Source: Rebecca billardiae RCC1528 (lineage: Eukaryota; Protista; Haptophyta). From it: a DNA stretch of 64,000 nt. The stretch covers positions 1,426,001 to 1,490,000 of the forward strand of contig OZ251227.1 in the NCBI GenBank assembly GCA_965240325.2, in the 5' to 3' direction. Made by a program: the position numbers and the translations under genes. A model generated the notes under the pieces. It was not told the DNA's origin. It did not search any database and saw nothing but the letters and a program-made list of their open reading frames with translations. Position 1 is the first letter of the stretch. Each line of letters starts with the position of its first letter. Positions 27,901-48,549 of this stretch are shown here, piece by piece.

Positions 27901-30900
27901 CTCCGCGCTCAGCGCGCCGCCAAACGGCGGCCGGTTGATCGGCACGCGCACCGAGCCTATCCCAACCGCACCGGCCGGCTGCGGCGCGCCGCCTTCGCCC
28001 TCGCCCTCGCCCTCGCCGGCGCGCGCGGGCGCGGCGCTCACGCGCAGCTCGAAGGCGTACACGCCGCCCGGCGCGAGCACGGCGCGGTGGAAGCCGAGGG
28101 AGGGCGAGGCGTCGCCCGTCGTCGTCACGCGCGCGCGGTCGGCCAGCGCCAGCCCCGCCGGGCCGAGCGCCCCGGCCGCGCCCTCGAGCAGCGCGCGCCA
28201 CGCGCGGCCCACCGACAGCGGCGCGCCCGGCGGCAGCAGCAGCGCGCGCGCCACGCGCTCCAGAGACGGCTGCTCGAGCCGGGTGTGGAGCACCAGCCGC
28301 CCCGGCTCGGCGGGGCTGAGCCACGTCGGGTTGTACTTGGCGCGCGCGAGCGGCTCGAACAGCACCGTCGGCACCGCGTGCGCCACCACGCTCACGCGCA
28401 CGGCCGCGGCGGCGGAGGCGCGGCCTGCCTTGTCGACGCGCACGCTCGCGCGGTACTCAGCCGGGGGCAGCGCGCCCGCCGGGATGCGGAGCACCGGCGC
28501 GGAGGCGTCGACGCCGCCGAGCGTGCCGTTGGCGCCCCCGCCGAGGGGCAGCGGCGCGGGCTCGCCCTCGCGCTCGAGCGCCCAGCTGAAGCTCAGGCCG
28601 GCCGCCCCCGCCTCGCCCGGCTCGTTGGGGTCGGCGCTGGCGGACGCGTCAAGCCACAGCGGCGCGCTCGCGGACGCGACGCGGTCGCCGCCCGCCAGCG
28701 CCGCGCGCACCGGCTGCACGCGCACCGCGACGCGCACGAGCGCGCTCGCGGCCTGCGCGGGCGCGTCCGCCATCGCCGCGCGCACGCGCAGCTCGTACTC
28801 GAAGCCGGCCGAGAGCGCGTGCGGCCCGAGCTGCAGCGAGGAGGAGCGCGCGCCGCCGAGCTCGGGCACGCGCGCGCCCGCGGCCGCGGCAGCGGCGCCG
28901 AGCGCGGCCGCGTCGCCGGCCGCCGCGTCGCCGTCGACGAGCAGCGCGCCCGTCGACGCGTCGCGCAGCGCGGCGAGCGCCCAGGAGAAGCCGACGCGCG
29001 GGCTGTCGCGCGGCCAGCACTCGGCGAGCTCCGCGCGCGCCGCGAGGCGCAGCGGCCGGCCCGCCGCCACCTCCACGCGCGTCGGCCCAAGCAGCCGCAC
29101 GGACGGACGTCCGTCGTGCACGACGCGCACGCGCCAGCTGGCGGGCTCGGAGCTCGCGTTGAGCAGCGGGGAGGTGACGACGAGCGAGAAGGCGTACTCG
29201 CCGCTCGTGCCCAGCCCCTCGAGCCTCGGCGCGGCCGCGCGCGCACCCAGCGCACCCAGCGCACCGCGCACCGCGCCCACCCCCTCGGCGCTCGACGCGT
29301 TCGAGTCCGCATCCCAGCGGTACGCGAGGCCAGGCGCGCCGCCGCCGCGCGAGCCCGTGCCGTCGAGCACGAGCGCGGCGCCGGGGCACGCGGAGACGTG
29401 CGCCGGCGCGGAGATGGCGGCGACGGGCGGCGCGCACGCGCCGTCCTCGCACGGCGCCGCCGGGTCGATCAGCACGCTCGCCGCCGCCGAGCCGAGCGCC
29501 TCCGCGCACGCGGGCGCGCACGCGGCGGGCCAGAGCGCGCCCGCGCGCGCGCCAACCGTCGCGCCCGCGCGCAGCGCGGTGGCCGCGGTGAGCTGCGCGA
29601 GCAGCGTCGAGTCGTCGCGCCAGCGGCAGAGCGGCTCGGCGGCGGCGCCGCCCCGCAGCAGCGCGAGCGTCTCGTCGTCGAGCACCGCGTCGCAGCGGCC
29701 GAGGTCGCTGCCCATGCCCGCGCGGTCGGTCGGCTGCGCGTCGAAGCGCAGCAGCAGCCCGGTGAGCCGCGCGTCGAAGCCAGCCCACTCGAGCGAGGGC
29801 GCGTGCAGCGGCGGCGACGGCGGCGGCGGCGGGGGCGCGGGCGGCGGGGGCGCGGGCGGCGGGTGCGCCGGCGGCGTGGGCGGCGCGCTCTCGCACGAGC
29901 CGTCGTCCACCTCCGCGCCCGAGTCGAAGTTTGGCGCCGCCGCGTGTGCGCAGCCGGCGCGCAGCAGTACGGGGAGCGCCTCGACGCCAAAGCCGAGGAC
30001 GACGGAGAGCTCCGGCAGCGAGAGCGCGCGCAGCGCGCCCACCACGTCCACGCGCTCGCCCGTCGCGCTCAGCTCGCGCGCCCAGAAGACGACGAGGATC
30101 GACGCGGCGCTCACCGAGTGCACGCGCACGTGCGCGCTCGGCACGCCCGCCACCGCGGCCGCGCGCGCCGCCGAGCCGGCGCGCTCCTCGTCTGTCGCGA
30201 GCTCCGACACGTCGCCCGAGCCGAGCACGCTGAAGTACACCTCGGGGATCGGCGCGGGGGGCAGCGGCGGCGGGTGCGGCGGGCGCGGCGGCGAGGGCGG
30301 CGGCGAGGGCGGCGGCGGCGAGGCGGGCGGCGCGCTCGGGGGCGGGCTCGAGGGCGGCGGCGGCGAGGGCGGCAGGCTCGGCGGAGGAGGTGGCGGCGCC
30401 GAGGGCGGCGGCAGCGGCGGCGGCGACGGCGGCGGCGCGGGCGGCGGCGCGGACGGCGGCGGCAGCGGCGGCGGCGCGGGCGGCGGGCGTGGCGGCGGCG
30501 GAGGCAGTGGCGGTGGCGCCGGGCTCGGCGGCGGGCGCGGCTTCCAATCGGGCGGAGGGCGTGGCGGGCTCGGCGGTGGCGGCGCGCGAGGCGACGGCGA
30601 GGGCGGCGGCGAGGGCGGAGGCGAAGGCGCCGGGCTGGGCGGCGGCGGCGGCGGCGCGCTCGGTGGCGGCGGTGGCGGCGACGACGGCGGCGGCGCGGGC
30701 GGCGGCGGCGACGGCGGCGGCAGTGGCGGAGGCGGCGGCAGAGGCGGCGCCGGTGGCGGGTGCGGAGGCGAGGGTGGCGGCGGGCTGGGCGGCGGCGAGG
30801 GCGGAGGTGACGGCGGCGAGGGCGGCGGCGGCGAGGGCGGCGGCGAGGGCGGCGGGCTCGGCGGCGGCGGGCTTGGCGGCGGCGCCGGCGGCGGGCTGGG

Positions 30901-32568
30901 CGGCGAGGGCGGCGGCGGGCTCGGCGGCGGCGAGGGCGGCGGGCTCGGTGGCGAGGGCGGTGGCGCCGGCGGCGGCGGCGACGGTGGCGGGCTCGGCGGT
31001 GGCGAGGGCGGCGGGCTCGGCGGAGGCGACGGTGGGGGGGGTGGCGAGGGCGGCGGGCGTGGCGGGAGCGGCGGCGGGCGCGGTGGCGCCGGCGGCGGCG
31101 AGCTCGGCGGTGGCGAGGGGGGCGGGGCCGGCGGCGAGGGCGGCGGCAGCGAGGGCGGCGGCGAGGGCGGCGGTGAGGGCGGCGGCGGGCTCGGCGGCGG
31201 CATCGGACGCGGCGAGGGCGGCGGCGGCGGCGCGGGCGGCGCCGGCGGCGGCGCCGGTGGCATCGGCGGCGGCGATGAGGGCGGCGGGCTCGGCGGCGGG
31301 CTCGGCGGCGATGGTGGCGGCGGTGACGGCGGCGGCGACGGCGGCGGCGACGGCGGCGGCGGGCTCGGCGGCGGCGCGGGCGGCGGGCTCGGCGGTGCGG
31401 GCGGCGGGCTCGGCGGCGGCGGCGACGGCGGCGGCGAAGGCGGCGGCGGGCTGGGCGGCGGGGCGGGCGGCGGCCTCGGCGGCAGCGGCGGCGGCGGCGG
31501 CGCCGGTGGCGGTGAGGGCGGCGGCGGGCTCGGCGGCGGCATCGGACGCGGCGAGGGCGGCGGCGGCGGCGCGGGCGGCGCTGGCGGCGGCGCCGGCGGC
31601 GTCGGCGGCGGCGATGAGGGCGGCGGGCTCGGCGGCGGGCTCGGCGGCGATGGTGGCGGCGGTGACGGCGGCGGCGACGGCGGCGGCGACGGCGGCGGCG
31701 GGCTCGGCGGCGGCGCGGGCGGCGGGCTCGGCGGTGCGGGCGGCGGGCTTGGCGGCGGCGGCGACGGCGGCGGCGACGGCGGCGGCGGGCTGGGCGGCGG
31801 GGCGGGCGGCGGCCTCGGCGGCAGCGGCGGCGGCGGCGGCGATGGCGGCGGTGAGGGCGGCGCGGGCGGCATCGGCGGCGCATCTGGAGGCGGCGGCGGC
31901 GGCGGCGACGGCGGCGGCGGCGGTGGCATCGCCGGCGGCGGCGGCGGCGGCGGGCTCGGTGGCGGCGGCGGCGGCGGGCTCGAAGGCGGGCTCGGCGGCG
32001 GCGGCGGCGGCGCATGGGGCGGCGGGCTCGGCGGCGGGCTCGGCGGCGGCGGGGGCGGCAGTGGCGGCGCGGGCGGAGGCGAGGATGGCGGGCTCGGCGG
32101 CGGGCTGGGCGGCGCCGGTGGCAAGGGTGGGCTGGGCGGCGGTGGGCTGGGCGGTGGGCTTGGTGGGGATGGCGGCGGACTTGGCGGTGGGCTCGGCGGC
32201 GAAGGCGGCGAGGGCGGGCTCGGCGGTGGTGGGCTCGGCGGCGGGCTGGGCGGCGGTGGCGGCGGGCTCGGCGGCGGGCTGGGCGGCGGGCTTGGCGGCG
32301 GCGATGGTGGTGGCGGTGGCGGCGGGCTGGGCGGCGGCGGGCTGGGCGGCGGGCTCGGCGGCGGGCTCGGCGGAGGCGGAGACGGTGGCGGGCTGGGCGG
32401 TGGCGGGCTGGGTGGCGGGCTCGGCGGCGACGATGGCGGCGGCGAAGGTGGCGGGCTCGGCGGCGGGCTCGGCGGCGGCGGCGGTGGGCTAGGCGGCGGC
32501 GGGCTGGGCGGCGGGCTGGGCGGTGGCGAGGGCGGCGGCGAGGGCGGTGGGCTGGGCGGCGGGCTGGG

Positions 32569-32601
<33 letters not shown>

Positions 32602-35600
32602 CGGCGGCGGGCTCGGCGGCGGCGAGGGAGGCGGCGAGGGCGGCGGGCTCGGCGGCGGCGCGGGCGGCGGCGGCGAGGGCGGCGGCGAGGGCGGCGGAGG
32701 CGGCGGTGGGCTGGGCGGCGGCGGGCTGGGCGGCGGGCTGGGCGGCGGGCTGGGCGGCGGCGGAGACGGTGGCGGGCTGGGCGGTGGCGGGCTGGGTGGC
32801 GGGCTCGGCGGCGACGATGGCGGCGGCGAAGGTGGCGGGCTGGGCGGCGGGCTGGGCGGCGGGCTGGGCGGCGGCGGGCTCGGCGGCGGGCTGGGCGGTG
32901 GCGCCGGCGGCGGCGAAGGTGGTGGGCTGGGCGGCGGGCTTGGCGGCGGTGGCGGCGGGCTGGGCGGCGGCGGGCTCGGCGGCGGGCTGGGCGGTGGCGA
33001 CGGCGGCGGCGACGGCGGTGGGCTTGGCGGCGGGCTGGGCGGCGGCGGCGGTGGACTCGGTGGCGGCGGGCTCGGCGGCGGGCTCGGTGGCGGCGACGGA
33101 GGCGAGGGTGGCGGCGGCTTCGGCGGCGGCGACGGCGGTGGCGCTGGCGGCGGCGGCGGCGGTGGCGACGGCGGCGGCGGCGGAGGCATGCGCGGCGGCG
33201 GCGGCGGCGGCGGGCTCGGCGGCGGCGGCGGCGGCGGTCTGGCAGGCGGTGCGGGCGGCGGCGCGCTCGGCACCGGCGGCGGGCTCGGTGACGGCGGTGG
33301 CGCGCTCGGCGGCGCGCTCGGCGGCGGCGACGGCGAGCACAGCCACTCGAGCGACCACAGACTCGAGTCCTTGTGCAGCCCAGGTCGCGCGCGCGGGCCC
33401 GGCACTGTCGCGCAGCAGTAGCAGCGCCCGTCCTCGTAGAAGGCGATCGACTGCGACGCGCAGCTGCCCACGAGCAGCTCGGCGCACGCCTGCGCGCTCG
33501 GCGCGATCGCGTCCGGCGGAGGCGCGTTGCCCTCGTCGATGCACGTGCCGCCAGGGACCGGCAGGAAAGCGACCGCGGAGATGTTGGTGTTGCCGCCGCA
33601 CGGGGGCGGGGGCGACGGGGGCGGCGACGGCGGCGGCGGCGGGCTGGGCGGCGGCGGGCTGGGCGGCGGGTGGGGCGGCGGCGCGGACGGCGGCGGCGAC
33701 GGGTAGGGCGGCGGCGGCGGGCGCGGTGGCGGCGGCGGTGGCGGCCGCGGTGGTGGCGGCGGCGGCGAGAGCGGTGGCGACAGTGGCGGCGGGGCTGGCG
33801 GCGGCGGCGCGGGCGGCGGCGGCAACGGCGGGGGGCTGGGCGGCGGCGACGGAGATGGGGACGGCACTGGCGGCGGCGGGCTCGGCAGCGGTGGGCTCGG
33901 CGGCGACGGCGGGCTCGGCGGCGGCGAGCCCGGCGGCGGGCTTAGCGGCGGTGCCGGCGGCGGCGGCACTGGCGGCGGGCGCGGCGGCTGTGGCGACGGC
34001 GCTGGTGGCGGCGGGCTCGGCATCGGCGGACTCGGCGGCGATGGCGGCGACGGCGGTGGCGGGCTCGGAGGTGGTGATGGCGGCGGCAGTGGCGAAGGTG
34101 GCACCGTCGGCGGCGGAGGGCTCGGCCGCGGCGGGCTCGGCGGCGATGGCGGCGGCAGGCTCGGTGGCGGCGGCGGCGGAGGTCGAGGTGGCGCGCTTGG
34201 CGGAGGCGCACTGGGCGGCGGGCTCGGAGGGGGCGGGCTCGGCGGTGATGGCGGCGGGCTCGGTGGTGGCGGTGGCGGAGATGACGGGGGCGTTGGGCTC
34301 GGCGGAGGCGACGGCCAAGCCGGTGGCTTTGGCGGCGGCGGGCTTGGCTGCGGCGGGCTGGGCGGCGACGGCGGCGGCGGGCTTGGTGGCGGCGCGGGCG
34401 GTGGCGACGGCGGCGACGGTGGCGAGGGTGAAGGCGGTGAGCTCGGTGATGAGGGCGGCGTCGGCTGGCCCGTCTGCACTGGGCTCGGCGGGGGCGGCGG
34501 CGCGCTCGGCGGCTCCGACGGCGGCGGTGGGCTGGGCAGCGGCGGGCTCGGCGGTGGCGGCGGCGCGCTTGGCGGCTCCGACGGCGGCGGTGGGCTGGGC
34601 AGCGGCGGGCTCGGCGGTGGCGGCGGCGCGCTTGGCGGCTCCGACGGCGGCGGTGGGCTGGGCAGCGGCGGGCTCGGCGGTGGCGGCGGCGCGCTTGGCG
34701 GCTCCGACGGCGGCGGTGGGCTGGGCAGCGGCGGGCTCGGCGGTGGCGGCGGCGCGCCCGGGGGCTGAGACGGCGGCGGTGGCGGCGGTGGACTGCTCGG
34801 CGGTGCGGCCGGCGGCGCGGGCGGTGGCGGGCACACCCACTCCGACTCCCACAGCGATGCAGACGGGCGCGGGTAGAGCGTGAACGGGTCCGGGCAGCAG
34901 TAGCACTCGCCCGTGTCCGCCCAGAAGCTGAACACCGAGCACGCGCTGTACAGCGCGGCAGCGCACTCGTCCTCGTCACGCGCACCCACCACGTCAGGCA
35001 CACTCGACAGGCGGCGCGGCCGGGGAGGGCCCGCCTTGTCGTCCGGCACGCACGAGTAGCCCGTCGGAGGACCGCCCGAGTACGCAGTCGCCTGAACCGC
35101 GCCATTGCCGTTGCAAGGCGGAGGTGGCGCGGGTGGCAACGACGGCGGTGGCGGAGGCGGCGGCGGGCTTGGCGGCGGTGGGCTTGGCGGCGGCATGGGC
35201 GGTGGTGACGGCGGCGGAGGCGGCGGCGGACTTGGCGGCGGTGGGCTTGGCGGCGGCATGGGCGGTGGTGACGGCGGCGGAGGTGGTGGCGGGCTTGGCG
35301 GCGGTGGGCTTGGCGGCGGCATGGGCGGAGGCGACGGCGGCGGAGGCGGCGGCGGGCTTGGCGGCGGTGGGCTTGGCGGCGGCATGGGCGGAGGCGACGG
35401 CGGCGGAGGCGGCGGCGGGCTTGGCGGCGGTGGGCTTGGCGGCGGCATGGGCGGTGGTGACGGCGGCGGAGGCGGCGGCGGGCTTGGCGGCGGTGGGCTT
35501 GGCGGCGGCTCGGGCGGTGGTGACGGCGGCGGAGGTGGTGGCGGGCTTGGCGGCGGTGGGCTTGGCGGCGGCATGGGCGGAGGCGACGGCGGCGGAGGCG

Positions 35601-36864
35601 GCGGCGGGTTTGGCGGCGGTGGGCTTGGCGGCGGCATGGGCGGTGGTGACGGCGGCGGAGGCGGCGGCGGGCTTGGCGGCGGTGGGCTTGGCGGCGGCTC
35701 GGGCGGTGGTGACGGCGGCGGAGGTGGTGGCGGGCTTGGCGGCGGTGGGCTTGGCGGCGGCATGGGCGGTGGCGACGGCGGTGGCGGCGGCGGCGGGCTT
35801 GGCGGCGGTGGGCTTGGCGGCGGCATGGGCGGTGGTGACGGCGGCGGAGGTGGTGGCGGGCTTGGCGGCGGTGGGCTTGGCGGCGGCATGGGCGGAGGCG
35901 ACGGCGGCGGAGGCGGCGGCGGGCTTGGCGGCGGTGGGCTTGGCGGCGGCATGGGCGGTGGTGACGGCGGCGGAGGTGGTGGCGGGCTTGGCGGCGGTGG
36001 GCTTGGCGGCGGCATGGGCGGAGGCGACGGCGGCGGAGGCGGCGGCGGGCTTGGCGGCGGTGGGCTTGGCGGCGGCATGGGCGGTGGCGACGGCGGCGGA
36101 GGCGGCGGCGGGCTTGGCGGCGGTGGGCTTGGCGGCGGCATGGGCGGTGGCGACGGCGGCGGAGGCGGCGGCGGGCTTGGCGGCGGTGGGCTTGGCGGCG
36201 GCATGGGCGGTGGTGACGGCGGCGGAGGCGGCGGCGGGCTTGGCGGCGGTGGGCTTGGCGGCGGCATGGGCGGTGGTGACGGCGGCGGAGGTGGTGGCGG
36301 GCTTGGCGGCGGTGGGCTTGGCGGCGGCATGGGCGGTGGTGACGGCGGCGGAGGTGGTGGCGGGCTTGGCGGCGGTGGGCTTGGCGGCGGCGACGGCGGC
36401 GGTGGCGGAGGTGGCGGTGGCGGCGGGCTCGGCGGCGGCGACGGTGGCGATGGCGGGTCCTGCGGCGGTGGCGACGGTGGCGGCAGCGGCGAGCACACCC
36501 ACTCCGACTCCCACAGCGATGCAGACGGGCGCGGGTAGAGCGTGAACGGGTCCGGGCAGCAGTAGCACTCGCCCGTGTCCGCCCAGAAGCTGAACACCGA
36601 GCACGCGCTGTACAGCGCGGCAGCGCACTCGTCCTCGTCACGCGCACCCACCACGTCAGGCACACTCGACAGGCGGCGCGGCCGGGGAGGCCCCGCCTTG
36701 TCGTCCGGCACGCACGAGTAGCCCGTCGGAGGACCGCCCGAGTACGCAGTCGCCTGAACCGCGCCATTGCCGTTGCAAGGCGGAGGTGGCGCGGGTGGCA
36801 ACGACGGCGGTGGTGGGCTCGGTGGCGGGGAGGGCGGTGGTGGCGATGGCGGCGGCGAGGGCGG

Positions 36865-36897
<33 letters not shown>

Positions 36898-37155
36898 CGG
36901 TGGCGGCGACGGCGGCGGTGATGGCGGCGGCGGCGGAGGCGGGCTTGGCGGCGGTGGCGATGGCGGCGGCGATGGCGGCGGTGGTGGTGGCGGAGACGGC
37001 GGTGGCGGGCTCGGTGGTGGCGACGGCGGAGGCGATGGCGGCGGCGGCGGAGGCGGGCTCGGTGGCGGCGGGCTGGGTGGCGGCGAGGGCGGCGGTGGCG
37101 GGGGCGGAGACGGCGGTGGCGGGCTCGGTGGTGGGGATGGCGGAGGTGATGGCGG

Positions 37156-37188
<33 letters not shown>

Positions 37189-39402
37189 CGGCGGCGGCGA
37201 GGGCGGCGGTGGCGGTGGCGGAGACGGCGGCGGCGGGCTCGGCGGTGGCGACGGCGGCGGTGATGGCGGCGGCGGCGGAGGTGGACTCGGCGGCGGTGGC
37301 GATGGCGGCGGCGACGGCGGCGGCGATGGCGGCGGTGGCGGTGGCGGAGACGGCGGTGGCGGACTGGGTGGTGGGGATGGCGGAGGCGATGGCGGCGGCG
37401 GAGGTGGCGGGCTCGGCGGTGGTGGCGACGGCGGCGGCGATGGCGGCGGTGGCGGCGGCGGAGACGGCGGTGGTGGCGACGGCGGTGGCGATGGCGGCGG
37501 TGGCGGAGGTGGACTCGGCGGCGGTGGCGACGGCGACGGCGATGGCGGCGGTGGCGGTGGCGGAGACGGTGGCGGTGGCGACGGCGGCGGCGATGGCGGC
37601 GGTGGCGGTGGCGGGCTCGGCGGTGGTGGCGACGGCGGCGGCGATGGCGGCGGTGGCGGAGGTGGACTCGGCGGCGGCGGCGACGGCGGAGGCGATGGCG
37701 GCGGTGGCGGTGGCGGGCTCGGCGGTGGTGGCGACGGCGGCGGCGATGGCGGCGGTGGCGGAGGTGGACTGGGCGGCGGTGGCGACGGCGGCGGCAATGG
37801 TGGCGGTGGCGGCGGCGGAGACGGCGGTGGTGGCGACGGCGGCGGCGATGGTGGCGGTGGCGGCGGCGGAGACGGCGGTGGTGGCGACGGCGGCGGCGAT
37901 GGCGGCGGTGGCGGCGGCGGAGACGGCGGTGGTGGCGACGGCGGTGGCGATGGCGGCGGTGGCGGTGGCCGGCTCGGCGGCGGTGGCGACGGCGGCGGCG
38001 ATGGCGGCGGTGGCGGTGGCGGAGACGGCGGTGGTGGCGACGGCGGCGGCGATGGCGGCGGTGGCGGTGGCGGGCTCGGCGGTGGTGGCGACGGCGGCGG
38101 CGATGGCGGCGGTGGCGGAGGTGGACTCGGCGGCGGCGGCGACGGCGGAGGCGATGGCGGCGGTGGCGGTGGCGGGCTCGGCGGTGGTGGCGACGGCGGC
38201 GGCGATGGCGGCGGTGGCGGAGGTGGACTGGGCGGCGGTGGCGACGGCGGCGGCAATGGTGGCGGTGGCGGCGGCGGAGACGGCGGTGGTGGCGACGGCG
38301 GCGGCGATGGTGGCGGTGGCGGCGGCGGAGACGGCGGTGGTGGCGACGGCGGCGGCGATGGCGGCGGTGGCGGTGGCGGAGACGGCGGTGGTGGCGACGG
38401 CGGCGGCGATGGCGGCGGTGGCGGTGGCGGGCTCGGCGGTGGTGGCGACGGCGGCGGCGATGGCGGCGGTGGCGGAGGTGGACTCGGCGGCGGCGGCGAC
38501 GGCGGAGGCGATGGCGGCGGTGGCGGTGGCGGAGACGGCGGTGGTGGCGACGGCGGCGGCGATGGCGGCGGTGGCGGTGGCGGGCTCGGCGGTGGTGGCG
38601 ACGGCGGCGGCGATGGCGGCGGTCGCGGAGGTGGACTCGGCGGCGGCGGCGACGGCGGAGGCGATGGCGGCGGTGGCGGTGGCGGGCTCGGCGGTGGTGG
38701 CGACGGCGGCGGCGATGGCGGCGGTGGCGGTGGCGGGCTCGGCGGTGGTGGCGACGGCGGCGGCGATGGTGGCGGTGGCGGCGGCGGAGATGGCGGTGGT
38801 GGCGACGGCGGCGGCGATGGTGGCGGTGGCGGCGGCGGAGACGGAGGTGGCGGGCTCGGTGGTGGGGATGGCGGAGGCGATGGCGGAGGCGGAGGTGGCG
38901 GGCTCGGCGGAGGTGGGCTCGGCGGCGGGCTCGGTGGCGGTGGCGGAGGTGGCGGTGGCGGCGGGCTCGGCGGCGGCGACGGTGGCGATGGCGGGTCCTG
39001 CGGCGGTGGCGACGGTGGCGGCAGCGGCGAGCACACCCACTCCGACTCCCACAACGATGCAGACGGGCGCGGGTAGAGCGTGAACGGGTCCGGGCAGCAG
39101 TAGCACTCGCCCGTGTCCGCCCAGAAGCTGAACACCGAGCACGCGCTGTACAGCGCGGCAGCGCACTCGTCCTCGTCACGCGCACCCACCACGTCAGGCA
39201 CACTCGACAGGCGGCGCGGCCGGGGAGGCCCCGCCTTGTCGTCCGGCACACACGAGTAGCCCGTCGGAGGACCGCCCGAGTACGCAGTCGCCTGAACCGC
39301 GCCATTGCCGTTGCAAGGCGGAGGTGGCGCGGGTGGCAACGACGGCGGTGGTGGGCTCGGTGGCGGGGAGGGCGGTGGTGGCGATGGCGGCGGCGAGGGC
39401 GG

Positions 39403-39435
<33 letters not shown>

Positions 39436-39693
39436 CGGTGGCGGCGACGGCGGCGGTGATGGCGGCGGCGGCGGAGGCGGGCTTGGCGGCGGTGGCGATG
39501 GCGGCGGCGATGGCGGCGGTGGTGGTGGCGGAGACGGCGGTGGCGGGCTCGGTGGTGGCGACGGCGGAGGCGATGGCGGCGGCGGCGGAGGCGGGCTCGG
39601 TGGCGGCGGGCTGGGTGGCGGCGAGGGCGGCGGTGGCGGAGGCGGAGACGGCGGTGGCGGGCTCGGTGGTGGGGATGGCGGAGGTGATGGCGG

Positions 39694-39726
<33 letters not shown>

Positions 39727-40161
39727 CGGCGGCGGCGAGGGCGGCGGTGGCGGTGGCGGAGACGGCGGCGGCGGGCTCGGCGGTGGCGACGGCGGCGGTG
39801 ATGGCGGCGGCGGCGGAGGTGGACTCGGCGGCGGTGGCGATGGCGGCGGCGACGGCGGCGGCGATGGCGGCGGTGGCGGTGGCGGAGACGGCGGTGGCGG
39901 ACTGGGTGGTGGGGATGGCGGAGGCGATGGCGGCGGCGGAGGTGGCGGGCTCGGCGGTGGTGGCGACGGCGGCGGCGATGGCGGCGGTGGCGGTGGCGGA
40001 GACGGCGGCGGCGGACTGGGTGGTGGGGATGGCGGAGGCGATGGCGGCGGCGGCGGAGGCGGGCTCGGCGGCGGTGGGCTGGGTGGCGGCGAGGGCGGCG
40101 GCGGCGGAGGCGGAGACGGCGGTGGCGGGCTCGGCGGTGGCGATGGCGGCGGTGATGGCGG

Positions 40162-40194
<33 letters not shown>

Positions 40195-42510
40195 CGGTGG
40201 CGGCGACGGCGGCGGCGGCGGTGGCGGAGACGGCGGTGGCGGGCTCGGTGGTGGGGATGGCGGAGGCGATGGCGGCGGCGGCGGTGGCGGGCTCGGCGGT
40301 GGCGATGGCGGCGGTGAGGGCGGCGGCGGCGGAGGCGGGCTTGGCGGTGGCGGGCTCGGAGGCGGCGACGGTGGTGGCGGTGGCGGCGAGCTCGGCGGCG
40401 GCGTCGACGGAGGCGGCGATGGCTGTGGGGGCGGCGGCGATGACGGCGGCGGTGGGCTCGGTGGCGGGCTCGGAGGCGGTGATGGCGGCGGCGGCGGAGG
40501 TGGACTCGGCGGTGGTGGCGACGGCGGCGGCGATGGCGGCGGTGGCGGTGGCGGGCTCGGCGGTGGTGGCGACGGCGGCGGTGATGGCGGCGGTGGCGGA
40601 GGTGGACTCGGCGGCGGCGGCGATGGCGGCGGCGATGGCGGCGGCGGCGGTGGCGGAAACGGCGGTGGCGGACTGGGTGGTAGGGATGGCGGAGGCGATG
40701 GCGGCGGCGGCGGAGGCGGGCTCGGAGGCGGCGGGCTCGGCGGCGGCGAAGGCGGCGGCGGCGGAGGCGGAGACGGCGGCGGAGGGCTCGGTGGTGGCGA
40801 CGGTGGCGGTGATGGTGGCGGCGGCGGTGGCGGGCTCGGTGGCGGTGGGCTCGGTGGCGGCGACGGCGGCGGCGGCGGTGGCGGAAACGGCGGTGGCGGA
40901 CTGGGTGGTGGGGATGGCGGAGGCGATGGCGGCGGCGGCGGAGGCGGGCTCGGAGGCGGCGGGCTCGGCGGCGGCGAAGGCGGCGGCGGCGGAGGCGGAG
41001 ACGGCGGCGGAGGGCTCGGTGGTGGCGACGGTGGCGGTGATGGTGGCGGCGGCGGTGGCGGGCTAGGTGGCGGTGGGCTCGGTGGTGGCAATGGCGGCGG
41101 CGGCGGTGGCGGAGACGGCGGCGGCGGGCTCGGCGGTGGCGATGGCGGCGGTGAGGGCGGCGGCGGCGGAGGCGGGCTTGGCGGCGGTGGCGATGGCGGC
41201 GGCGACGGCGGCGGCGGCGGTGGCGGAAACGGCGGTGGCGGACTGGGTGGTGGGGATGGCGGAGGCGACGGCGGCGGCGGCGGAGGCGGGCTCGGAGGCG
41301 GCGGGCTCGGCGGCGGTGAAGGCGGCGGCGGCGGTGGCGGAGACGGCGGCGGAGGGCTCGGTGGTGGCGACGGTGGCGGTGATGGTGGCGGCGGCGGTGG
41401 CGGGCTAGGTGGCGGTGGGCTCGGTGGTGGCAATGGCGGCGGCGGCGGTGGCGGAGACGGCGGCGGCGGGCTCGGCGGTGGCGATGGCGGCGGTGAGGGC
41501 GGCGGCGGCGGAGGCGGGCTTGGCGGCGGTGGGCTCGGTGGCGGCGACGGCGGCGGTGGCGGTGGCGGAGACGGCGGTGGCGGGCTCGGCGGTGGCGATG
41601 GCGGAGGCGATGGCGGCGGCGGCGGAGGCGAGCTCGGCGGCGGCGGCGACGGAGGCGGCGATGGCTGTGGGGGCGGCGGCGATGACGGCGGCGGTGGGCT
41701 CGGTGGCGGGCTCGGAGGCGGTGATGGCGGCGGTGGCGGCGGCGAGCTGGGGGGCGGCGGCGATGGCGGTGGGCGTGGCGGTGGTGGCGGCGGCGGACTT
41801 GGCGGTGGCGGGCTGGGCGGCGGGCTCGGCGGTGGCGACGGCGGCGGCGGTGGCGGCGAGCTCGGCGGCGGCGGCGACGGAGGCGGCGATGGCTGTGGGG
41901 GCGGCGGCGATGACGGCGGCGGTGGGCTCGGTGGCGGGCTCGGAGGCGGCGACGGCGGCGGTGGCGGCGGCGAGCTCGGTGGCGGCGGCGATGGCGGTGG
42001 GCTTGGTGGTGGTGGCGGCGGCGGACTTGGCGGTGGCGGGCTGGGCGGCGGGCTCGGAGGCGGCGACGGTGGTGGCGGTGGCGGCGAGCTCGGCGGCGGC
42101 GGCGACGGAGGCGGCGATGGCTGTGGGGGCGGCGGCGATGACGGCGGCGGTGGGCTCGGTGGCGGGCTCGGAGGCGGCGACGGCGGCGGTGGCGGCGGCG
42201 AGCTCGGTGGCGGCGGCGATGGCGGTGGGCTTGGTGGTGGTGGCGGCGGCGGACTTGGCGGTGGCGGGCTGGGCGGCGGGCTCGGAGGCGGCGACGGTGG
42301 TGGCGGTGGCGGCGAGCTCGGCGGCGGCGGCGACGGAGGCGGCGATGGCTGTGGGGGCGGCGGCGATGACGGCGGCGGTGGGCTCGGTGGCGGGCTCGGA
42401 GGCGGTGATGGCGGGGGCGGCGGCGGCGAGCTGGGGGGCGGCGGCGATGGCGGGGGCGATGGAGGCGGTGGCGGCGGCGGACTTGGCGGTGGCGGGCTGG
42501 GCGGCGGGCT

Positions 42511-42542
<32 letters not shown>

Positions 42543-43080
42543 AGCTGGGCGGTGGTGGCGATGGCGGTGGCGATGGTGGCGGTGGTGGCGGCGGACTTGG
42601 CGGTGGCGGGCTGGGCGGCGGGCTCGGAGGCGGCGACGGTGGTGGCGGTGGCGGCGAGCTCGGCGGCGGCGGCGACGGAGGCGGCGATGGCTGTGGGGGC
42701 GGCGGCGATGACGGCGGCGGTGGGCTCGGTGGCGGGCTCGGAGGCGGCGACGGCGGCGGTGGCGGCGGCGAGCTCGGTGGCGGCGGCGATGGCGGTGGGC
42801 TTGGTGGTGGTGGCGGCGGCGGACTTGGCGGTGGCGGGCTGGGCGGCGGGCTCGGAGGCGGCGACGGTGGTGGCGGTGGCGGCGAGCTCGGCGGCGGCGG
42901 CGACGGAGGCGGCGATGGCTGTGGGGGCGGCGGCGATGACGGCGGCGGTGGGCTCGGTGGCGGGCTCGGAGGCGGTGATGGCGGGGGCGGCGGCGGCGAG
43001 CTGGGGGGCGGCGGCGATGGCGGGGGCGATGGAGGCGGTGGCGGCGGCGGACTTGGCGGTGGCGGGCTGGGCGGCGGGCT

Positions 43081-43112
<32 letters not shown>

Positions 43113-44448
43113 AGCTGGGCGGTGGTGGCGATGGCGGTGGCGATGGTGGCGGTGGTGGCGGCGGACTTGGCGGTGGCGGGCTGGGCGGCGGGCTCGGAGG
43201 CGGCGACGGTGGTGGCGGTGGCGGCGAGCTCGGCGGCGGCGGCGACGGAGGCGGCGATGGCTGTGGGGGCGGCGGCGATGACGGCGGCGGTGGGCTCGGT
43301 GGCGGGCTCGGAGGCGGCGACGGCGGCGGTGGCGGCGGCGAGCTCGGTGGCGGCGGCGATGGCGGTGGGCTTGGTGGTGGTGGCGGCGGCGGACTTGGCG
43401 GTGGCGGGCTGGGCGGCGGGCTCGGAGGCGGCGACGGTGGTGGCGGTGGCGGCGAGCTCGGCGGCGGCGGCGACGGAGGCGGCGATGGCTGTGGGGGCGG
43501 CGGCGATGACGGCGGCGGTGGGCTCGGTGGCGGGCTCGGAGGCGGTGATGGCGGCGGTGGCGGCGGCGAGCTCGGTGGCGGCGGCGATGGCGGTGGGCTC
43601 GGTGGTGGTGGCGGCGGCGGACGTGGCGGTGGCGGGCTGGGCGGCGGGCTCGGAGGTGGCGACGGTGGTGGCGGTGGCGGCGAGCTCGGCGGCGGCGGCG
43701 ACGGAGGCGGCGATGGCTGTGGGGGCGGCGGCGATGACGGCGGCGGTGGGCTCGGCGGCGGGCTCGGAGGCGGCGACGGCGGGGGCGGCGGCGGCGAGCT
43801 GGGGGGCGGCGGCGATGGCGGGGGCGATGGAGGCGGTGGCGGCGGCGGACTTGGCGGTGGCGGGCTGGGCGGCGGGCTCGGAGGCGGCGACGGTGGTGGC
43901 GGTGGCGGCGAGCTCGGCGGCGGCGGCGACGGAGGCGGCGATGGCTGTGGGGGCGGCGGCGATGATGGCGGCGGTGGGCTCGGTGGCGGGCTCGGAGGCG
44001 GCGACGGCGGCGGTGGCGGCGGCGAGCTCGGTGGCGGCGGCGACGGAGGCGGCGATGGCTGTGGGGGCGGCGGCGATGACGGCGGCGGTGGGCTCGGTGG
44101 CGGGCTCGGAGGCGGTGATGGCGGCGGTGGCGGCGGCGAGCTCGGTGGCGGCGGCGATGGCGGTGGGCTCGGTGGTGGTGGCGGCGGCGGACTTGGCGGT
44201 GGCGGGCTGGGCGGCGGGCTCGGATGCGGCGACGGTGGTGGCGGTGGCGGCGAGCTCGGCGGCGGCGGCGACGGAGGCGGCGATGGCTGTGGGGGCGGCG
44301 GCGATGACGGCGGCGGTGGGCTCGGTGGCGGGCTCGGAGGCGGTGATGGCGGGGGCGGCGGCGGCGAGCTGGGGGGCGGCGGCGATGGCGGGGGCGATGG
44401 AGGCGGTGGCGGCGGCGGACTTGGCGGTGGCGGGCTGGGCGGCGGGCT

Positions 44449-44480
<32 letters not shown>

Positions 44481-44790
44481 AGCTGGGCGGTGGTGGCGAT
44501 GGCGGTGGCGATGGTGGCGGTGGTGGCGGCGGACTTGGCGGTGGCGGGCTGGGCGGCGGGCTCGGAGGCGGCGACGGTGGTGGCGGTGGCGGCGAGCTCG
44601 GCGGCGGCGGCGACGGAGGCGGCGATGGCTGTGGGGGCGGCGGCGATGACGGCGGCGGTGGGCTCGGTGGCGGGCTCGGAGGCGGTGATGGCGGGGGCGG
44701 CGGCGGCGAGCTGGGGGGCGGCGGCGATGGCGGGGGCGATGGAGGCGGTGGCGGCGGCGGACTTGGCGGTGGCGGGCTGGGCGGCGGGCT

Positions 44791-44822
<32 letters not shown>

Positions 44823-45132
44823 AGCTGGGCGGTGGTGGCGATGGCGGTGGCGATGGTGGCGGTGGTGGCGGCGGACTTGGCGGTGGCGGGCTGGGCGGCG
44901 GGCTCGGAGGCGGCGACGGTGGTGGCGGTGGCGGCGAGCTCGGCGGCGGCGGCGACGGAGGCGGCGATGGCTGTGGGGGCGGCGGCGATGACGGCGGCGG
45001 TGGGCTCGGTGGCGGGCTCGGAGGCGGTGATGGCGGGGGCGGCGGCGGCGAGCTGGGGGGCGGCGGCGATGGCGGGGGCGATGGAGGCGGTGGCGGCGGC
45101 GGACTTGGCGGTGGCGGGCTGGGCGGCGGGCT

Positions 45133-45164
<32 letters not shown>

Positions 45165-46158
45165 AGCTGGGCGGTGGTGGCGATGGCGGTGGCGATGGTG
45201 GCGGTGGTGGCGGCGGACTTGGCGGTGGCGGGCTGGGCGGCGGGCTCGGAGGCGGCGACGGTGGTGGCGGTGGCGGCGAGCTCGGCGGCGGCGGCGACGG
45301 AGGCGGCGATGGCTGTGGGGGCGGCGGCGATGACGGCGGCGGTGGGCTCGGTGGCGGGCTCGGAGGCGGCGACGGCGGCGGCGGTGGCGGCGAGCTCGGC
45401 GGCGGCGGCGACGGAGGCGGCGATGGCTGTGGGGGCGGCGGCGATGACGGCGGCGGTGGGCTCGGTGGCGGGCTCGGAGGCGGCGACGGCGGCGGTGGCG
45501 GCGGCGAGCTCGGTGGCGGCGGCGATGGCGGTGGGCTTGGTGGTGGTGGCGGCGGCGGACTTGGCGGTGGCGGGCTGGGCGGCGGGCTCGGAGGCGGCGA
45601 CGGTGGTGGCGGTGGCGGCGAGCTCGGCGGCGGCGGCGACGGAGGCGGCGATGGCTGTGGGGGCGGCGGTGATGACGGCGGCGGTGGGCTCGGTGGCGGG
45701 CTCGGAGGCGGTGATGGCGGCGGTGGCGGCGGCGAGCTCGGTGGCGGCGGCGACGGAGGCGGCGATGGCTGTGGGGGCGGCGGCGATGACGGCGGCGGTG
45801 GGCTCGGTGGCGGGCTCGGAGGCGGTGATGGCGGCGGTGGCGGCGGCGAGCTCGGTGGCGGCGGCGATGGCGGTGGGCTTGGTGGTGGTGGCGGCGGCGG
45901 ACTTGGCGGTGGCGGGCTGGGCGGCGGGCTCGGAGGCTGCGACGGTGGTGGCGGTGGCGGCGAGCTTGGCGGCGGCGGCGACGGAGGCGGCGATGGCTGT
46001 GGGGGCGGCGGCGATGACGGCGGCGGTGGGCTCGGTGGCGGGCTCGGAGGCGGTGATGGCGGCGGTGGCGGCGGCGAGCTCGGTGGCGGCGGCGATGGCG
46101 GTGGGCTCGGTGGTGGTGGCGGCGGCGGACTTGGCGGTGGCGGGCTGGGTGGCGGGCT

Positions 46159-46190
<32 letters not shown>

Positions 46191-47251
46191 AGCTGGGCGG
46201 TGGTGGCGATGGCGGTGGCGAAGGTGGCGGTGGCGGCGGCGGACTTGGCGGTGGCGGACTGGGCGGCGAGCTCGGAGGCGGTGATGGCGGCGGTGGTGGC
46301 GGCGAGCTCGGCGGCGGCGGCGATGGCGGTGGGCTCGGTGGTGGTGGCGGCGGCGGAGACGGCGGCGGTGGGCTCGGTGGCGGGCTCGGCGGTGGCGACG
46401 GCGGCGGTGGGCTCGGTGGTGGTGGCGGCGGCGGACTTGGCGGTGGCGGGCTGGGCGGCGGGCTCGGAGGTGGCGACGGTGGTGGCGGCGGAGGCGAGCT
46501 CGGCGGCGGCGGCGACGGAGGCGGCGATGGCTGTGGGGGCGGCGGCGATGACGGCGGCGGTGGGCTCGGTGGCGGGCTCGGAGGCGGTGATGGCGGCGGT
46601 GGCGGCGGCGAGCTCGGTGGCGGCGGCGATGGCGGTGGGCTCGGTGGTGGTGGCGGATGTGGGCTCGGCGGTGGCGGGCTCGGCGGCGGGCTCGGCGGCG
46701 GGCTTGGTGGCGGCGGAGGCGGCGAGCTCGGTGGCGGTCGCGCCAGCGGTTGGGGTGGCGGCGGGCTTGGTGGTGGTGGCGGCGGCGAGCTTGGTGGCGG
46801 CGAGCTCGGTGGCGGTTGCGCCGGCGGTTGGGGCGGCGGCGGGCTCGGCGGCGGTGGCGGCGGCGGTGGCGGCGGCGAGCTCGGTGGCGACGATGGCGGC
46901 GGCGGCGGCGGCGAGGGGGGAGACGGTGGCGGTCGCACGGGCGGTGGCGGCGGCGGTGGGCTTGGAGGCGGCGGAGGCGAAGCTGGCGAGTCACACGCAT
47001 CACACGCGATCGTCGCTTCCGCATCGGTGCACATGTCAAAGCCACCGTCGTCGTCGTCGTCGTCGTCATCACCGCTGAGCCGGCGGCGGCGATGGTCGAG
47101 GCGGCGGCGCTCACCGTCGCCGCCAAGCCCGTCCGGCCGATCCTCCGAGCGGCGCAGCCAGGCCGGTGCACCTGCGCGCGCCGGCATGGTCGCGAGGCGG
47201 CGGCGCGCGCGGCGGTCCTGCCCTCCACCGGTGTGGCAGTCATCGTCGACA

Positions 47252-47284
<33 letters not shown>

Positions 47285-48549
47285 GAGGTCAGCTGGCGTC
47301 GCCCAGCAGCTTCGAGCGCCACGGTCCCCGCGTCATTCCCCGCGGCGCCGCGCGCCAGGCTCAGCATCCGGCGCGCGCGCCGCCGGTCGGAGCCGTCCTC
47401 GGCGCCGTCATCGAGGCAGCCCGGCTCGACGCTGCCCCAGAGCTCGACAGCGGCGCACGCGCCGACGGGGGCGTCGTTGGCGGCGAAGGTGTTGCAGCGC
47501 AGCCGCAGGCAGCCCTCCGACAGAAGGATCGCGCCACCGCCGAGCTCCGCCTCGTTCCCGCGGAAGGCGCTCATGGCGACCCGCAGCGTGCTCCACTCGG
47601 CCGCGATCGCGCCGCCGTACCTGCCGGCGGTGTTGTTCTCAAACGAGCTGCGCGACACGTCGAGGGGCCGGGCGTCGTACGCGTACACGGCGGCGCCGGA
47701 GGAGGAGACGCCAAAGTGCGTGAACGCCGAGTCCTCGACGAAGACGGCGCTCCCGTAGATGTACGCAGCGCCGCCCGTGGTCGCGGCCGCGCCCGGCCAC
47801 TCCGGCCCCGCAAACGCGCAGCCTCGGCACGTCCAGCTCGAGGCGTACACGTACCACGCGCCGCCGACCTGGCCGGCGACGGAGGCGCCGAAGCTGGCCG
47901 TGTGCACGTCGAGCGTCGAGTACACGGCGTACACCGCGCCGCCCGTCCACGCCGCGACGTTGTCGTCGAAGTGGCCGCGCATCAGCAAGAGGGAGGACTC
48001 GAAGACGCATGCCGCCGCACCCTGCGTCGCGCTGTTGCCGCGGAATTCGCAGTCCTCGAGCGTCGCCGTCGACTGGTAGATGAGCGCGCCGCCGCCGTCA
48101 GACACGCCGCCGTTGTCGTAGAAGGTGCAGTTGCTCAGCGTGGCGCTCGACCTGTACACCTTGAGCGCGCCGCCCTGGCTTGCGTCCTGGAAGCGAAGGC
48201 GGTGGAGAGAGAGCCGCGCGGCGTGGTCGGCCTTCATCAGCCGGCCAGCGAGGCTCGGCCCCGGCGTGAGCACCGCCGGCGCGCTCGTGTTCGCGCACGC
48301 GACCGTCACGTCGTCCTTGTCCACGCACAGCGTGGATGCAACCTCGAACGTCGTCGGCTCGAGCACGAGCGTGTCACACGCGCGCAGGTCGGCAAACGCC
48401 GCGCTGAGCTCCGCGGTCGTGCCGATGGGCACCGTGCGACAAGCGGTGGCAGACGCACGCCCGACGGGCACGAGCAGCTGGGCAGCTGTGAGCACCAGCG
48501 CGCGGCAGAGCACGCCCTTCGGGCGTGCCGCGGAGTGGTAGCGTGCCAT
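23422..48549 (-). CDS. Giant (8375 aa) polycystin-1/REJ-GPS-like membrane protein with beta-helix head and extensin-like stalk
   Basis: Uninterrupted ORF; signal peptide; GG(A/G)-FxxN beta-helix repeats; SPn stalk; REJ-like region (ALAGGDR, LDASASADP, PINRPPFGG, PRTGHALLTRF); GPS CMWWD..W..GC..CACTHLTDF at ~26560-26673; five TM helices; IQ motif; two EF-hands. Confidence 0.85.
30250..46980 (-). repeat. 16.7-kb coding Ser-Pro(n) repeat array with distinct sub-arrays (114-, 51- and 63-bp units)
   Basis: GGCTGTGGGG spaced 228/342 bp (multiples of 114) at 41.6-46.5 kb; 51-bp unit at ~37.4-38.8 kb; 63-bp Met-containing unit at ~35.2-36.4 kb; another 63-bp unit x4 at ~34.5-34.75 kb. Confidence 0.95.
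34831..39315 (-). repeat. Three near-identical 285-bp Cys-rich modules (39031-39315, 36493-36777, 34831-35115) plus a diverged copy at 33337-33600
   Basis: CNGNGAVQ...CAAALYSACSVFSFWADTGECYCCPD...WESEWVC is identical in protein; only a few synonymous differences. Confidence 0.95.

Follow-up and report, generated by a model that had tools for sequence, protein, structure and literature searches.

A short stretch rich in arginine and aspartate, found in a 64,000-bp segment of the Rebecca billardiae genome (the window, to which all positions below refer), raises the question of whether a giant surface protein of this alga is processed proteolytically, and of what such processing would yield. The first-pass annotation had placed the stretch at the junction between a head and a stalk, and had read it as a silacidin-like polyprotein that sheds its head and releases acidic peptides. 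In the translation of the window, the stretch belongs to an open frame of 8,375 codons on the minus strand (23422-48549), as do all the features described here. From its predicted domains, the product is a giant REJ/GPS (polycystin-1-like) receptor. It begins with a predicted signal peptide (aa 1-35, 48445-48549), recognized by reading from its basic N-region, its hydrophobic core and its end (...GRASA↓TACRT), where small residues precede TACRT; AF2 pLDDT is below 50 over leader residues 1-34, and seven of the nine paralogues have a comparable leader at their N-terminus, the remaining two rows being trimmed to the start of the head. The head is a predicted right-handed beta-helix with PMP-type repeats (aa 36-378, 47416-48444), matching the Pfam families Beta_helix (2.9e-10) and Chlam_PMP (2.1e-8), modelled by AF2 with pLDDT above 90, and with PL6 lyases, adhesins and tailspikes as Foldseek matches. 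Composition in 200-aa blocks reveals a stalk of the type (S-P3-7)n (30100-46992), which has ~5,600 aa and four Cys-rich beads, three of them carrying PRRLSS. A REJ domain and a GPS motif (26557-28125; Pfam 1.3e-26 and 1.9e-5, respectively), the latter reading CACTHLTDF (26560-26586), precede the first transmembrane segment, a hydrophobic stretch directly after the GPS motif. Because REJ/GPS and then this segment lie downstream, the head, the loop discussed below and the stalk are predicted to be extracellular. EF-hands are also present (Pfam). The same REJ and GPS modules, followed by transmembrane segments and EF-hands, are found in polycystin-1 and the sea-urchin REJ receptors, and receptors of this type with GPS autoproteolysis are processed into non-covalently associated fragments. 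Among the described REJ/GPS members, we know of no counterpart of an extensin-like stalk of ~5,600 aa that bears a beta-helix head at its N-terminal end, nor of the RR(x)L/poly-Asp loop.

The Arg/Asp stretch comprises 128 aa (aa 379-506, 47032-47415) and lies between the conserved Cys378 and Cys507, as defined by the paralogue alignment (A1) and the AF2 model. Cys507 opens a cap with the pattern C-x8-C-xx-C (aa 507-519, 46993-47031), conserved in the paralogues and part of the head fold in the model. Its residues C507, A512 and C516 are invariant across the nine paralogues of A1, and its pLDDT ranges from 75 to 89, residues 509-518 forming a helix. L013, a paralogue that lacks the insertion, has its cap (pLDDT 77-89) contiguous with the beta-helix. 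Between the confident head and cap, pLDDT falls below 50 at 382-392 and 397-502. According to alignment and model, the stretch is a clade-specific disordered insertion in the folded cap at the C-terminal end of the head's beta-helix, and not a simple head-stalk junction. The number of cysteines in head and cap varies among the paralogues and is uninformative on disulfide pairing. As a separate observation, a complex prediction that paired the head (36-380) with the cap (497-530) gave no answer (score 0.01) and favours neither side.

All the RRL and poly-Asp strings listed in the first-pass annotation were recovered in the minus-strand translation of aa 379-506. Five Arg clusters end in (x)Leu there; in two cases [T]SG and a run of aspartates (D10 and D8) come next. 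Site 1, RRRARRML (aa 389-396, 47362-47385), aligns with DRRRRLL in a diverged paralogue, L012. Site 2, RRQL (aa 417-420, 47290-47301), is RARRL-TG in L012 and leads into poly-Asp run 1, TSG-D10-V-DDD (aa 421-437, 47239-47289), with Cys438 (47236-47238) directly behind it. Site 3, RRARRRL (aa 446-452, 47194-47214), corresponds to RRTRRRL in L012. Site 4, ERRRL (aa 480-484, 47098-47112), occurs only in the C10 and C3 copies of the alignment, while site 5, HRRRRL (aa 486-491, 47077-47094), is GLRRL-SG in L012 and leads into poly-Asp run 2, SG-D8 (aa 492-501, 47047-47076). A strict RRL is present at three of the five loop sites and at four of four in L012, the other two loop sites being RRxL; all fit R-x-L, with Arg at P3 and Leu at P1. 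The RR(x)L pattern of the loop exceeds chance: Leu or x-Leu closes five of its six Arg clusters, and the RR.?L count (eight overlapping, five separate) was never equalled in 100,000 shuffles of the 128 loop residues, which gave a mean of 0.65. Regarding composition, the loop has 32 Asp, five Ser and no Lys. The poly-Asp runs are (GAC)n microsatellites; TRF detected only (GAC)n and simple GC repeats. As this class of repeat is common in the genome (~1,900 overlapping (GAY)8 matches, similar to the reversed control), poly-Asp is unremarkable by itself, and the remarkable feature of the predicted protein is the conserved placement of poly-Asp right after RR(x)L-[ST]G.

Among the nine paralogues of A1, the RR(x)L/poly-Asp insertion is found only in C10, C3 (two copies) and C14; in L015, a fifth insertion carrier, this loop contains D12 without RRL. 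The insertion is attributed to one young clade of the paralogous family, and the loop appears dispensable for the family's basic function, because more distant paralogues do without it. The head of L012 is 53% identical to that of the receptor; four of the RR(x)L sites recur in its loop in unchanged order, and at two of them [ST]G-polyAsp comes next. The runs themselves vary in length. Run 1 measures D12 in the two C3 copies and reaches D34 in L012, where a Cys again stands right behind it (WCPSEY); for run 2, one C3 copy has D12 and L012 has D4. At site 2 both Arg codons differ between the receptor and L012, and only synonymously; the eight codons of site 3 (D-RR-x-RRR-L) show five synonymous differences and one non-synonymous; at site 5 (R-R-L-S-G) there are four synonymous differences and none that change the protein. 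All five insertion-bearing paralogues stay in frame between head and cap, although their insertions are of unequal length. Judging from these comparisons, which are restricted to paralogues within one genome and in which three of the four copies bearing the RR(x)L insertion are nearly identical, the loop is probably translated and under selection. A protein search of the genome with the loop only found three near-identical copies and failed to recover L012, because its non-motif loop sequence is so diverged. An amidation site, Gly-Arg-Arg (AAGRRQL), was considered and dropped, as it is not conserved in L012.

The first-pass annotation had proposed conservation of the motifs in orthologues as a check, and this was borne out in part: it holds for the diverged paralogue L012, with mostly synonymous change in the motif codons compared, and no orthologue was found outside the genome. 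An exhaustive HMMER search over 1.8 billion representatives gave generic PMP/beta-helix proteins at most 34% identical and without poly-Asp or RRL, and a word-based search of 90% clusters gave one match of 30% identity; in both, Pro-rich giants may be hidden by clustering or uncalled, and the genome's own protein is likewise missing. The ESM Atlas yielded generic beta-helix clusters only. By itself, the loop would amount to a plausible prediction from motifs, for a family so far seen in this genome only.

The same grammar is found elsewhere in the genome. In ectodomain frames retrieved from it, 20 of 49 distinct RR runs are directly followed by Leu, against 3-5 expected (P <= 5e-8); because paralogous repeats and a small number of non-coding flanks were counted, the events are not independent. 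Among these runs are those of a cohesin-bearing giant unrelated to the receptor, with four RRRL-Q[ST]SF loops, and those of another unrelated module, which reads RRRQL...RRRL-QAG-D6. Exposed loops of giant surface proteins that have no relation to the receptor show a strong excess of Leu behind RR. The full RRL-x-G-D5 pattern is limited to this receptor family and one other locus. The REJ-GPS ectodomain, in contrast, has no RR dipeptide among its 76 Arg, where 4.8 are expected (P = 0.008), and the cytosolic part of the receptor has 11, against 11.1 expected. The Pherophorin and alveolin Pfam families gave no matches in the genome, a result that is uninformative.

The likeness to the diatom processing signal noted in the first-pass annotation is well founded as far as the motif is concerned. 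In silaffins, the repeats carry a terminal RRIL or RRNL that is removed (PMC4557024), and the units of silacidin and cingulin end in RXL (PMC5525289). Like the loop, the diatom precursors (silaffin, silacidin, cingulin, silicanin) are secreted and carry RRxL, RRL or RXL at the C-terminal end of their units, and silacidin units are acidic, as are the poly-Asp runs. Several features differ. The organism is a haptophyte relative and not a diatom (one protein of the genome has the haptophyte Diacronema lutheri as the source of its closest named relative), the silica context is absent, and there is no sequence homology. Tandem homologous units are lacking; the acidic segments are pure Asp runs, unlike the Ser/Asp/Glu phosphopeptides of silacidins, and peptides that are Ser-rich and acidic or Lys-rich (polyamine-type) are not present. 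Furthermore, the diatom precursors are small and soluble, whereas the sites described here lie in a loop of a folded domain of a giant membrane receptor. A second comparison is offered by the apicomplexan export signals. Toxoplasma TEXEL (RRLxx) is cut after Leu by the Golgi protease ASP5, which also acts at internal sites (PMC4764566), and it shares the RRL motif with the loop, occurs internally and N-terminally, and tolerates Ala or Ser at P1'. Plasmodium PEXEL (RxLxE/Q/D) is cut by plasmepsin V (PMV), and the loop sites do not have E/Q/D at P2'. In contrast to both, the alga is free-living and a host-export role is absent. The third comparison is S1P/SKI-1, which cuts in the Golgi after the Leu of R-x-x-L, RRIL and RRLL being used in plants and animals. 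Its consensus is Rx[LIT][KL] (PMC9237531), from which the loop departs, since P2 at the five sites is M, Q, R, R and R, and not Leu, Ile or Thr; in addition, the conserved GLRRL, RARRL and RPRRL have no Arg at P4.

The most likely reading is that the RR(x)L motifs would be recognition sites of a secretory-pathway endoprotease cutting behind Leu, for which diatom silaffins and silacidins and Toxoplasma ASP5 offer precedents. That such RXL/TEXEL-type cutting gives a two-chain head/stalk protein with its poly-Asp exposed or freed has, in our judgement, an even chance of being right. If all five sites are cut, the head would be left with a basic C-terminal tail, and three short basic or neutral spacers would be excised together with a 32-aa peptide starting TSG-D10, whose net charge would be about -9, or about -14 if its RRARRRL tail were trimmed. 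Cutting at site 5 would leave cap and stalk with SG-D8 as their new N-terminus. Since the cap, with its conserved cysteines, is part of the head fold, the head would probably be retained; homology and AF2 confidence are the basis for expecting the cap to stay on the head. Processing would then be comparable to the removal of a connecting peptide from a folded precursor. Head shedding, as first proposed, is accordingly less likely than a two-chain product, the loop being within a folded cap. The proposed release of acidic peptides survives only for run 1, which could leave as a free peptide with its conserved Cys, whereas run 2 would remain as the cap/stalk N-terminus. In the intact loop, the basic spacers would offset the charge of the poly-Asp runs. 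Cleavage would unmask these runs at the stalk tip, over 1 micrometre away from the membrane, where they could bind cations or basic matrix components.

Other readings of the loop have to be weighed against this one. The silacidin-like polyprotein, in which RXL cuts would shed the head and free acidic peptides for mineral or cation handling, draws on the identical form of the motif in diatom RXL/RRxL units and on the two sites that delimit the single 32-aa peptide. We regard it as improbable. The segments between the sites are unrelated in sequence and are not homologous repeat units (TRF agrees), so that the term polyprotein, in the silaffin or silacidin sense, does not fit; the loop is neither Ser- nor phosphate-rich and, with its near-lack of Ser and lack of Lys, has no silacidin-like character; the delimited peptide may be tethered by its conserved Cys. 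Beyond the retention of the head and of run 2, the organism is a relative of Diacronema, a non-silicifying haptophyte, and the confinement of the full RRL-x-G-D5 pattern to this family and one other locus also speaks against it. Another objection would be that the stretch is absent from the mature mRNA, as an in-frame intron or a stop-poor, GC-rich artefact. The region does have 78-88% GC with long open frames in several frames and on both strands, and GC3 is lower in the loop (0.83) than in the head (0.94). Nevertheless, this objection is scarcely credible in view of the motif-restricted synonymous substitutions and the kept Cys between diverged paralogues, the frame preserved across five paralogues whose insertions differ in length, and a codon choice typical of the gene (CGC/CGG, GAC, CTC/CTG); inspection by eye found no convincing flanking splice donor/acceptor pair. 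An intron starting at GTGAG (~47113) is implausible, the only CAG lying ~30 nt downstream.

Cutting could also take place after the last Arg, with Leu as a mere P1' residue, if these were multibasic furin/kexin-type sites (R-x-R/K-R↓). RARR↓M, RARR↓R and RRRR↓L fit R-x-[KR]-R, and the genome has one P-domain match. However, it is the Leu and not the Arg spacing that is conserved, GLRRL and RARRL of L012 and RPRRL of the beads having no P4 Arg. Moreover, none of the 38 S8 matches in the genome falls at the place of the sole P-domain match, whose 1,515-aa frame has no S8 catalytic domain; both searches were made exon by exon, so the absence of a convertase is not proven by them. We therefore consider a convertase site very unlikely. 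Somewhat more weight is due to the idea that the loop is never cut and is a charge-patterned hinge, in which Arg helices pair with Asp runs, or both serve to bind Ca2+ or charged wall polymers, RR(x)L being kept for binding or folding. Taken in blocks, the charges of the loop almost balance (24 Arg to 36 Asp plus Glu), AF2 places low-confidence helices over its Arg-rich parts, poly-Asp stands beside the head without RRL in L015 (D12) and L017 (D18), and the host is of a Ca2+-related receptor type (REJ, GPS, EF-hands). We hold such a hinge to be possible but rather unlikely, as it leaves unexplained the preference for Leu after RR in unrelated proteins, the absence of RR in the folded ectodomain, and the conservation of the RR(x)L-[ST]G blocks alone while the rest drifts. 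Cutting behind Leu remains the preferred reading, and its prediction for the receptor is a two-chain head/stalk joint with an acidic tip on a micrometre-long stalk.

RXL cutting is central to the maturation of diatom silica proteins, and its enzyme has been described as still unknown (PMC5525289), while the near-identical apicomplexan RRL/RxL signals are cut by A1B aspartic proteases. The occurrence of the motif both at the receptor locus and in unrelated giants of the cell surface suggests that a haptophyte may use the signal for ordinary surface-protein maturation. In its widest form, RR(x)L would be a general haptophyte secretory maturation signal, cut after Leu by a membrane-anchored A1B family of the type of L049, a protease encoded in this genome, which would activate itself at its own conserved RRRL pro-junction. 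It would form one ancestral housekeeping pathway with diatom RXL, Toxoplasma TEXEL, Plasmodium PEXEL and possibly oomycete RxLR, and a masked receptor loop would become an exposed poly-Asp tip. We consider this general proposal unlikely as a whole; if true, several lineage-specific 'export' or 'biomineral' motifs would join one older pathway, and the L049 class would be a concrete candidate for the diatom RXL enzyme. Within the genome, sequence and analogy make L049 a candidate enzyme for RR(x)L cutting. This A1B aspartic protease combines a signal peptide and a C-terminal transmembrane segment with the motifs DTG and DSG; its best solved relative is plasmepsin V (1.7e-23). L049 has the flap Glu, S3 Gln and S2 Tyr that contact the P3/P2 Arg in PMV/ASP5, residues that do not discriminate for specificity, because plant 'aspartic proteinase 36-like' proteins, its nearest named relatives outside haptophytes, have the same PMV/ASP5-type pocket. 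The junction between the pro and mature parts of L049 reads RRRRL, followed by DE, and RR(x)L is kept at this junction in its homologues.

The protein is encoded by a single open frame of 8,375 codons on the minus strand (window 23422-48549). It begins with a leader resembling a signal peptide (aa 1-35) and a right-handed beta-helix head (aa 36-378; Pfam Beta_helix 2.9e-10, Chlam_PMP 2.1e-8), which AF2 models with pLDDT >90 and which Foldseek matches to PL6 lyases, adhesins and tailspikes. These are followed by an Arg/Asp loop (aa 379-506, window 47032-47415), a short Cys-rich cap (aa 507-519) and an (S-P3-7)n stalk of about 5,600 residues carrying four Cys-rich beads. Because a REJ domain (1.3e-26), a GPS motif (1.9e-5, CACTHLTDF), a TM segment, EF-hands and further TM segments lie C-terminal of them, head, loop and stalk form the ectodomain of a receptor of the polycystin-1/REJ type. 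Three of the stalk beads are identical (window 33000-39500, minus strand); each contains PRPRRLSS, an RRL lacking a P4 Arg within an apparently folded module.

Every string named in the first-pass annotation is present in the minus-strand translation of the loop. The five sites, RRRARRML (aa 389-396), RRQL (417-420), RRARRRL (446-452), ERRRL (480-484) and HRRRRL (486-491), all have the form R-x-L with P3 Arg and P1 Leu, most as RRL and two as RRxL. With overlaps, RR.?L occurs eight times in the 128 residues, against a shuffle mean of 0.65, and none of 100,000 shuffles equalled the observed value; Leu or x-Leu terminates five of the six Arg clusters. Encoded by (GAC)n arrays, the poly-Asp runs are by themselves unremarkable, since such repeats are abundant genome-wide, at approximately the level of the reversed control. 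AF2 predicts the loop to be disordered (pLDDT <50 at residues 382-392 and 397-502), and confidence is regained in the cap (pLDDT 75-89, helix 509-518). L013, a paralogue lacking the insertion, has a confidently modelled cap (pLDDT 77-89) that directly adjoins the last rung. According to these models, the loop is inserted within the head's folded C-terminal cap, and is not the simple head-stalk junction previously proposed.

The genome (72 Mb, 41 contigs) has nine head paralogues, all within giant open frames and followed by a Pro-rich stalk. Their alignment (A1) shows that C-x(n)-C-[TSD]-[DN]-x5-[AF]-C-x2-C is common to all nine at the head end. The first loop of this motif has only 5-8 residues in four paralogues and carries a D12 run in L015; an Arg/Asp insertion of 115-130 residues is present in the window's gene, two copies on contig 3 and one on contig 14 (L012). 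The distant paralogue L015 (G000:C13:73052-74125) has its D12 in the same cap loop without RRL, and another, L017 (G000:C14:2268196-2269122), has D18 immediately N-terminal of the head, also without RRL. In the paralogues L014 (G000:C12:1747110) and L016 (C7:2527390), Pro-rich spacers separate repeats of a ~130-aa globular module (EGYEACTPGYWKNHLPQW...). The contig 3 copies, L010 (G000:C3:3771995-3773530, minus) and L011 (C3:3780843-3782366, plus), form a divergent pair ~7 kb apart with 98% identical head and loop; what separates them from the window's copy is mostly poly-Asp run length (D10/D12/D12 for run 1 and D8/D8/D12 for run 2 in these near-identical copies).

The head of L012 is 53% identical and its loop retains RR(x)L at four sites, in the same order (DRRRRLL, RARRL-TG-D34, RRTRRRL and GLRRL-SG-D4), together with the Cys directly after the first Asp run. 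The rest of the L012 loop is strongly diverged, and a loop-only search of the genome does not recover it. The codons of D-RR-x-RRR-L have five synonymous differences and one non-synonymous, those of R-R-L-S-G four and none, and the two differences in the RR codons of site 2 are both synonymous. Judged from the sequence, this pattern is a signature of selection on the peptide, making it unlikely that the loop is an intron or an artefact. Conservation of the motifs is borne out by the paralogue L012; protein database searches gave no orthologue outside the Rebecca billardiae genome, a soft absence because the genome's own protein is likewise missing from their results.

The RR(x)L sites have the same motif form as the diatom RXL signal, in which silaffin units lose RRIL and RRNL and silacidin units end in RXL (PMC4557024; PMC5525289); the protease responsible is unknown (PMC5525289). 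The TEXEL protease ASP5 of Toxoplasma has the consensus RRLxx and cuts after Leu with a tolerant P1', internal sites included (PMC4764566). RXL-type processing at the loop's sites is the best explanation, to which we give about an even chance. Among other enzymes, S1P (consensus Rx[LIT][KL]; PMC9237531) fits poorly, because P2 is M, Q or R in the loop and several conserved sites lack P4 Arg. Furin/kexin cutting would account for the Arg residues but not for the conserved Leu, and the sole P-domain match in the genome has no adjoining S8 domain. The main rival, a charge-patterned loop that stays uncut, we consider possible though rather unlikely.

Assuming cuts after Leu at all five sites, RXL-type processing would yield a head ending at 396 with a basic C-terminal tail (...RRRARRML), a spacer of 24 aa (397-420, net charge +1), an acidic peptide (421-452, TSG-D10-V-DDD-C...RRARRRL, net charge -9, or about -14 with its tail trimmed as in silaffins), spacers of 32 aa (453-484, +2) and 7 aa (485-491, +3), and a cap and stalk product starting at 492 with SG-D8 (net charge -12 over its first 28 aa). 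At most one free acidic peptide (421-452) would be released, bearing the conserved Cys, and the second acidic run, SG-D8, would become the stalk tip. Since the loop lies inside the folded cap, cutting would leave two chains sharing one module with conserved cysteines. The earlier analogy with diatom RXL processing is reasonable and is adopted here. A polyprotein of the silacidin type, head shedding and a mineral role are not supported.

In ectodomain frames fetched from the genome, 20 of 49 distinct RR runs stand directly before Leu, against 3-5 expected (P <= 5e-8), although these events are not independent and include a few non-coding flanks. The folded REJ-GPS ectodomain (window 26500-30100, minus strand; aa 6150-7340) has 76 Arg and no RR dipeptide, against 4.8 expected (P = 0.008), and RR frequency is as expected in the cytosolic part of the same receptor. 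Both patterns are consistent with recognition of RR(x)L by an enzyme in the lumen. As a complete motif, RRL-x-G-D5 occurs in the genome only in the window gene's family and at C17:377166. This last locus (L027, ~aa 470-530) belongs to a different Pro-rich giant, in which an unrelated globular module has a D/E/G-rich run, RRRQL, a basic stretch and RRRL-QAG-D6-GDGDG in that order. Also on contig 17, an open frame of 20,156 codons that matches cohesin repeatedly (C17:400905-430736; L038-L041) has a loop with RRL, a basic stretch and RRRL-Q[ST]SF in four repeats.

The candidate enzyme is L049, an A1B aspartic protease (G000:C1:529503-530504; L049:1273-3093, plus strand) with an identical 607-aa gene call (P0151) in a public assembly. 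It has a signal peptide, DTG and DSG motifs, a C-terminal TM segment and Pfam matches to Asp, TAXi_N and TAXi_C; among its named homologues the closest belongs to Diacronema lutheri (53% identity), which supports a haptophyte placement. The best solved relative is plasmepsin V (1.7e-23), with which it has the PC-GC--CG-H motif in common, and BACE and pepsins are far behind. L049 also has a flap Glu, an S3 Gln and a Tyr seven residues past the second catalytic Asp, residues said in a modelling preprint to hold the P3/P2 Arg in PvPMV and TgASP5. Its pro/mature junction, RH-A-RRRRL/DE (slash at the junction), may mark self-processing or activation of the S1P type; four haptophyte homologues, including KFE25_009295 of Diacronema lutheri, and plant 'aspartic proteinase 36-like' proteins keep it as RR(x)L. 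These plant proteins have the same pocket residues, so the pocket is not proof of specificity, and the features of L049 are compatible with RR(x)L specificity without proving it. More broadly, a haptophyte signal of RXL/TEXEL-like form, together with a concrete candidate for the protease, is worth testing. A second, divergent A1 aspartic protease, L050 (G000:C16:872736-873629), has a long poly-Pro insertion before the end of its C-terminal lobe, and plasmepsin V is again the best relative of solved structure (9.5e-7).
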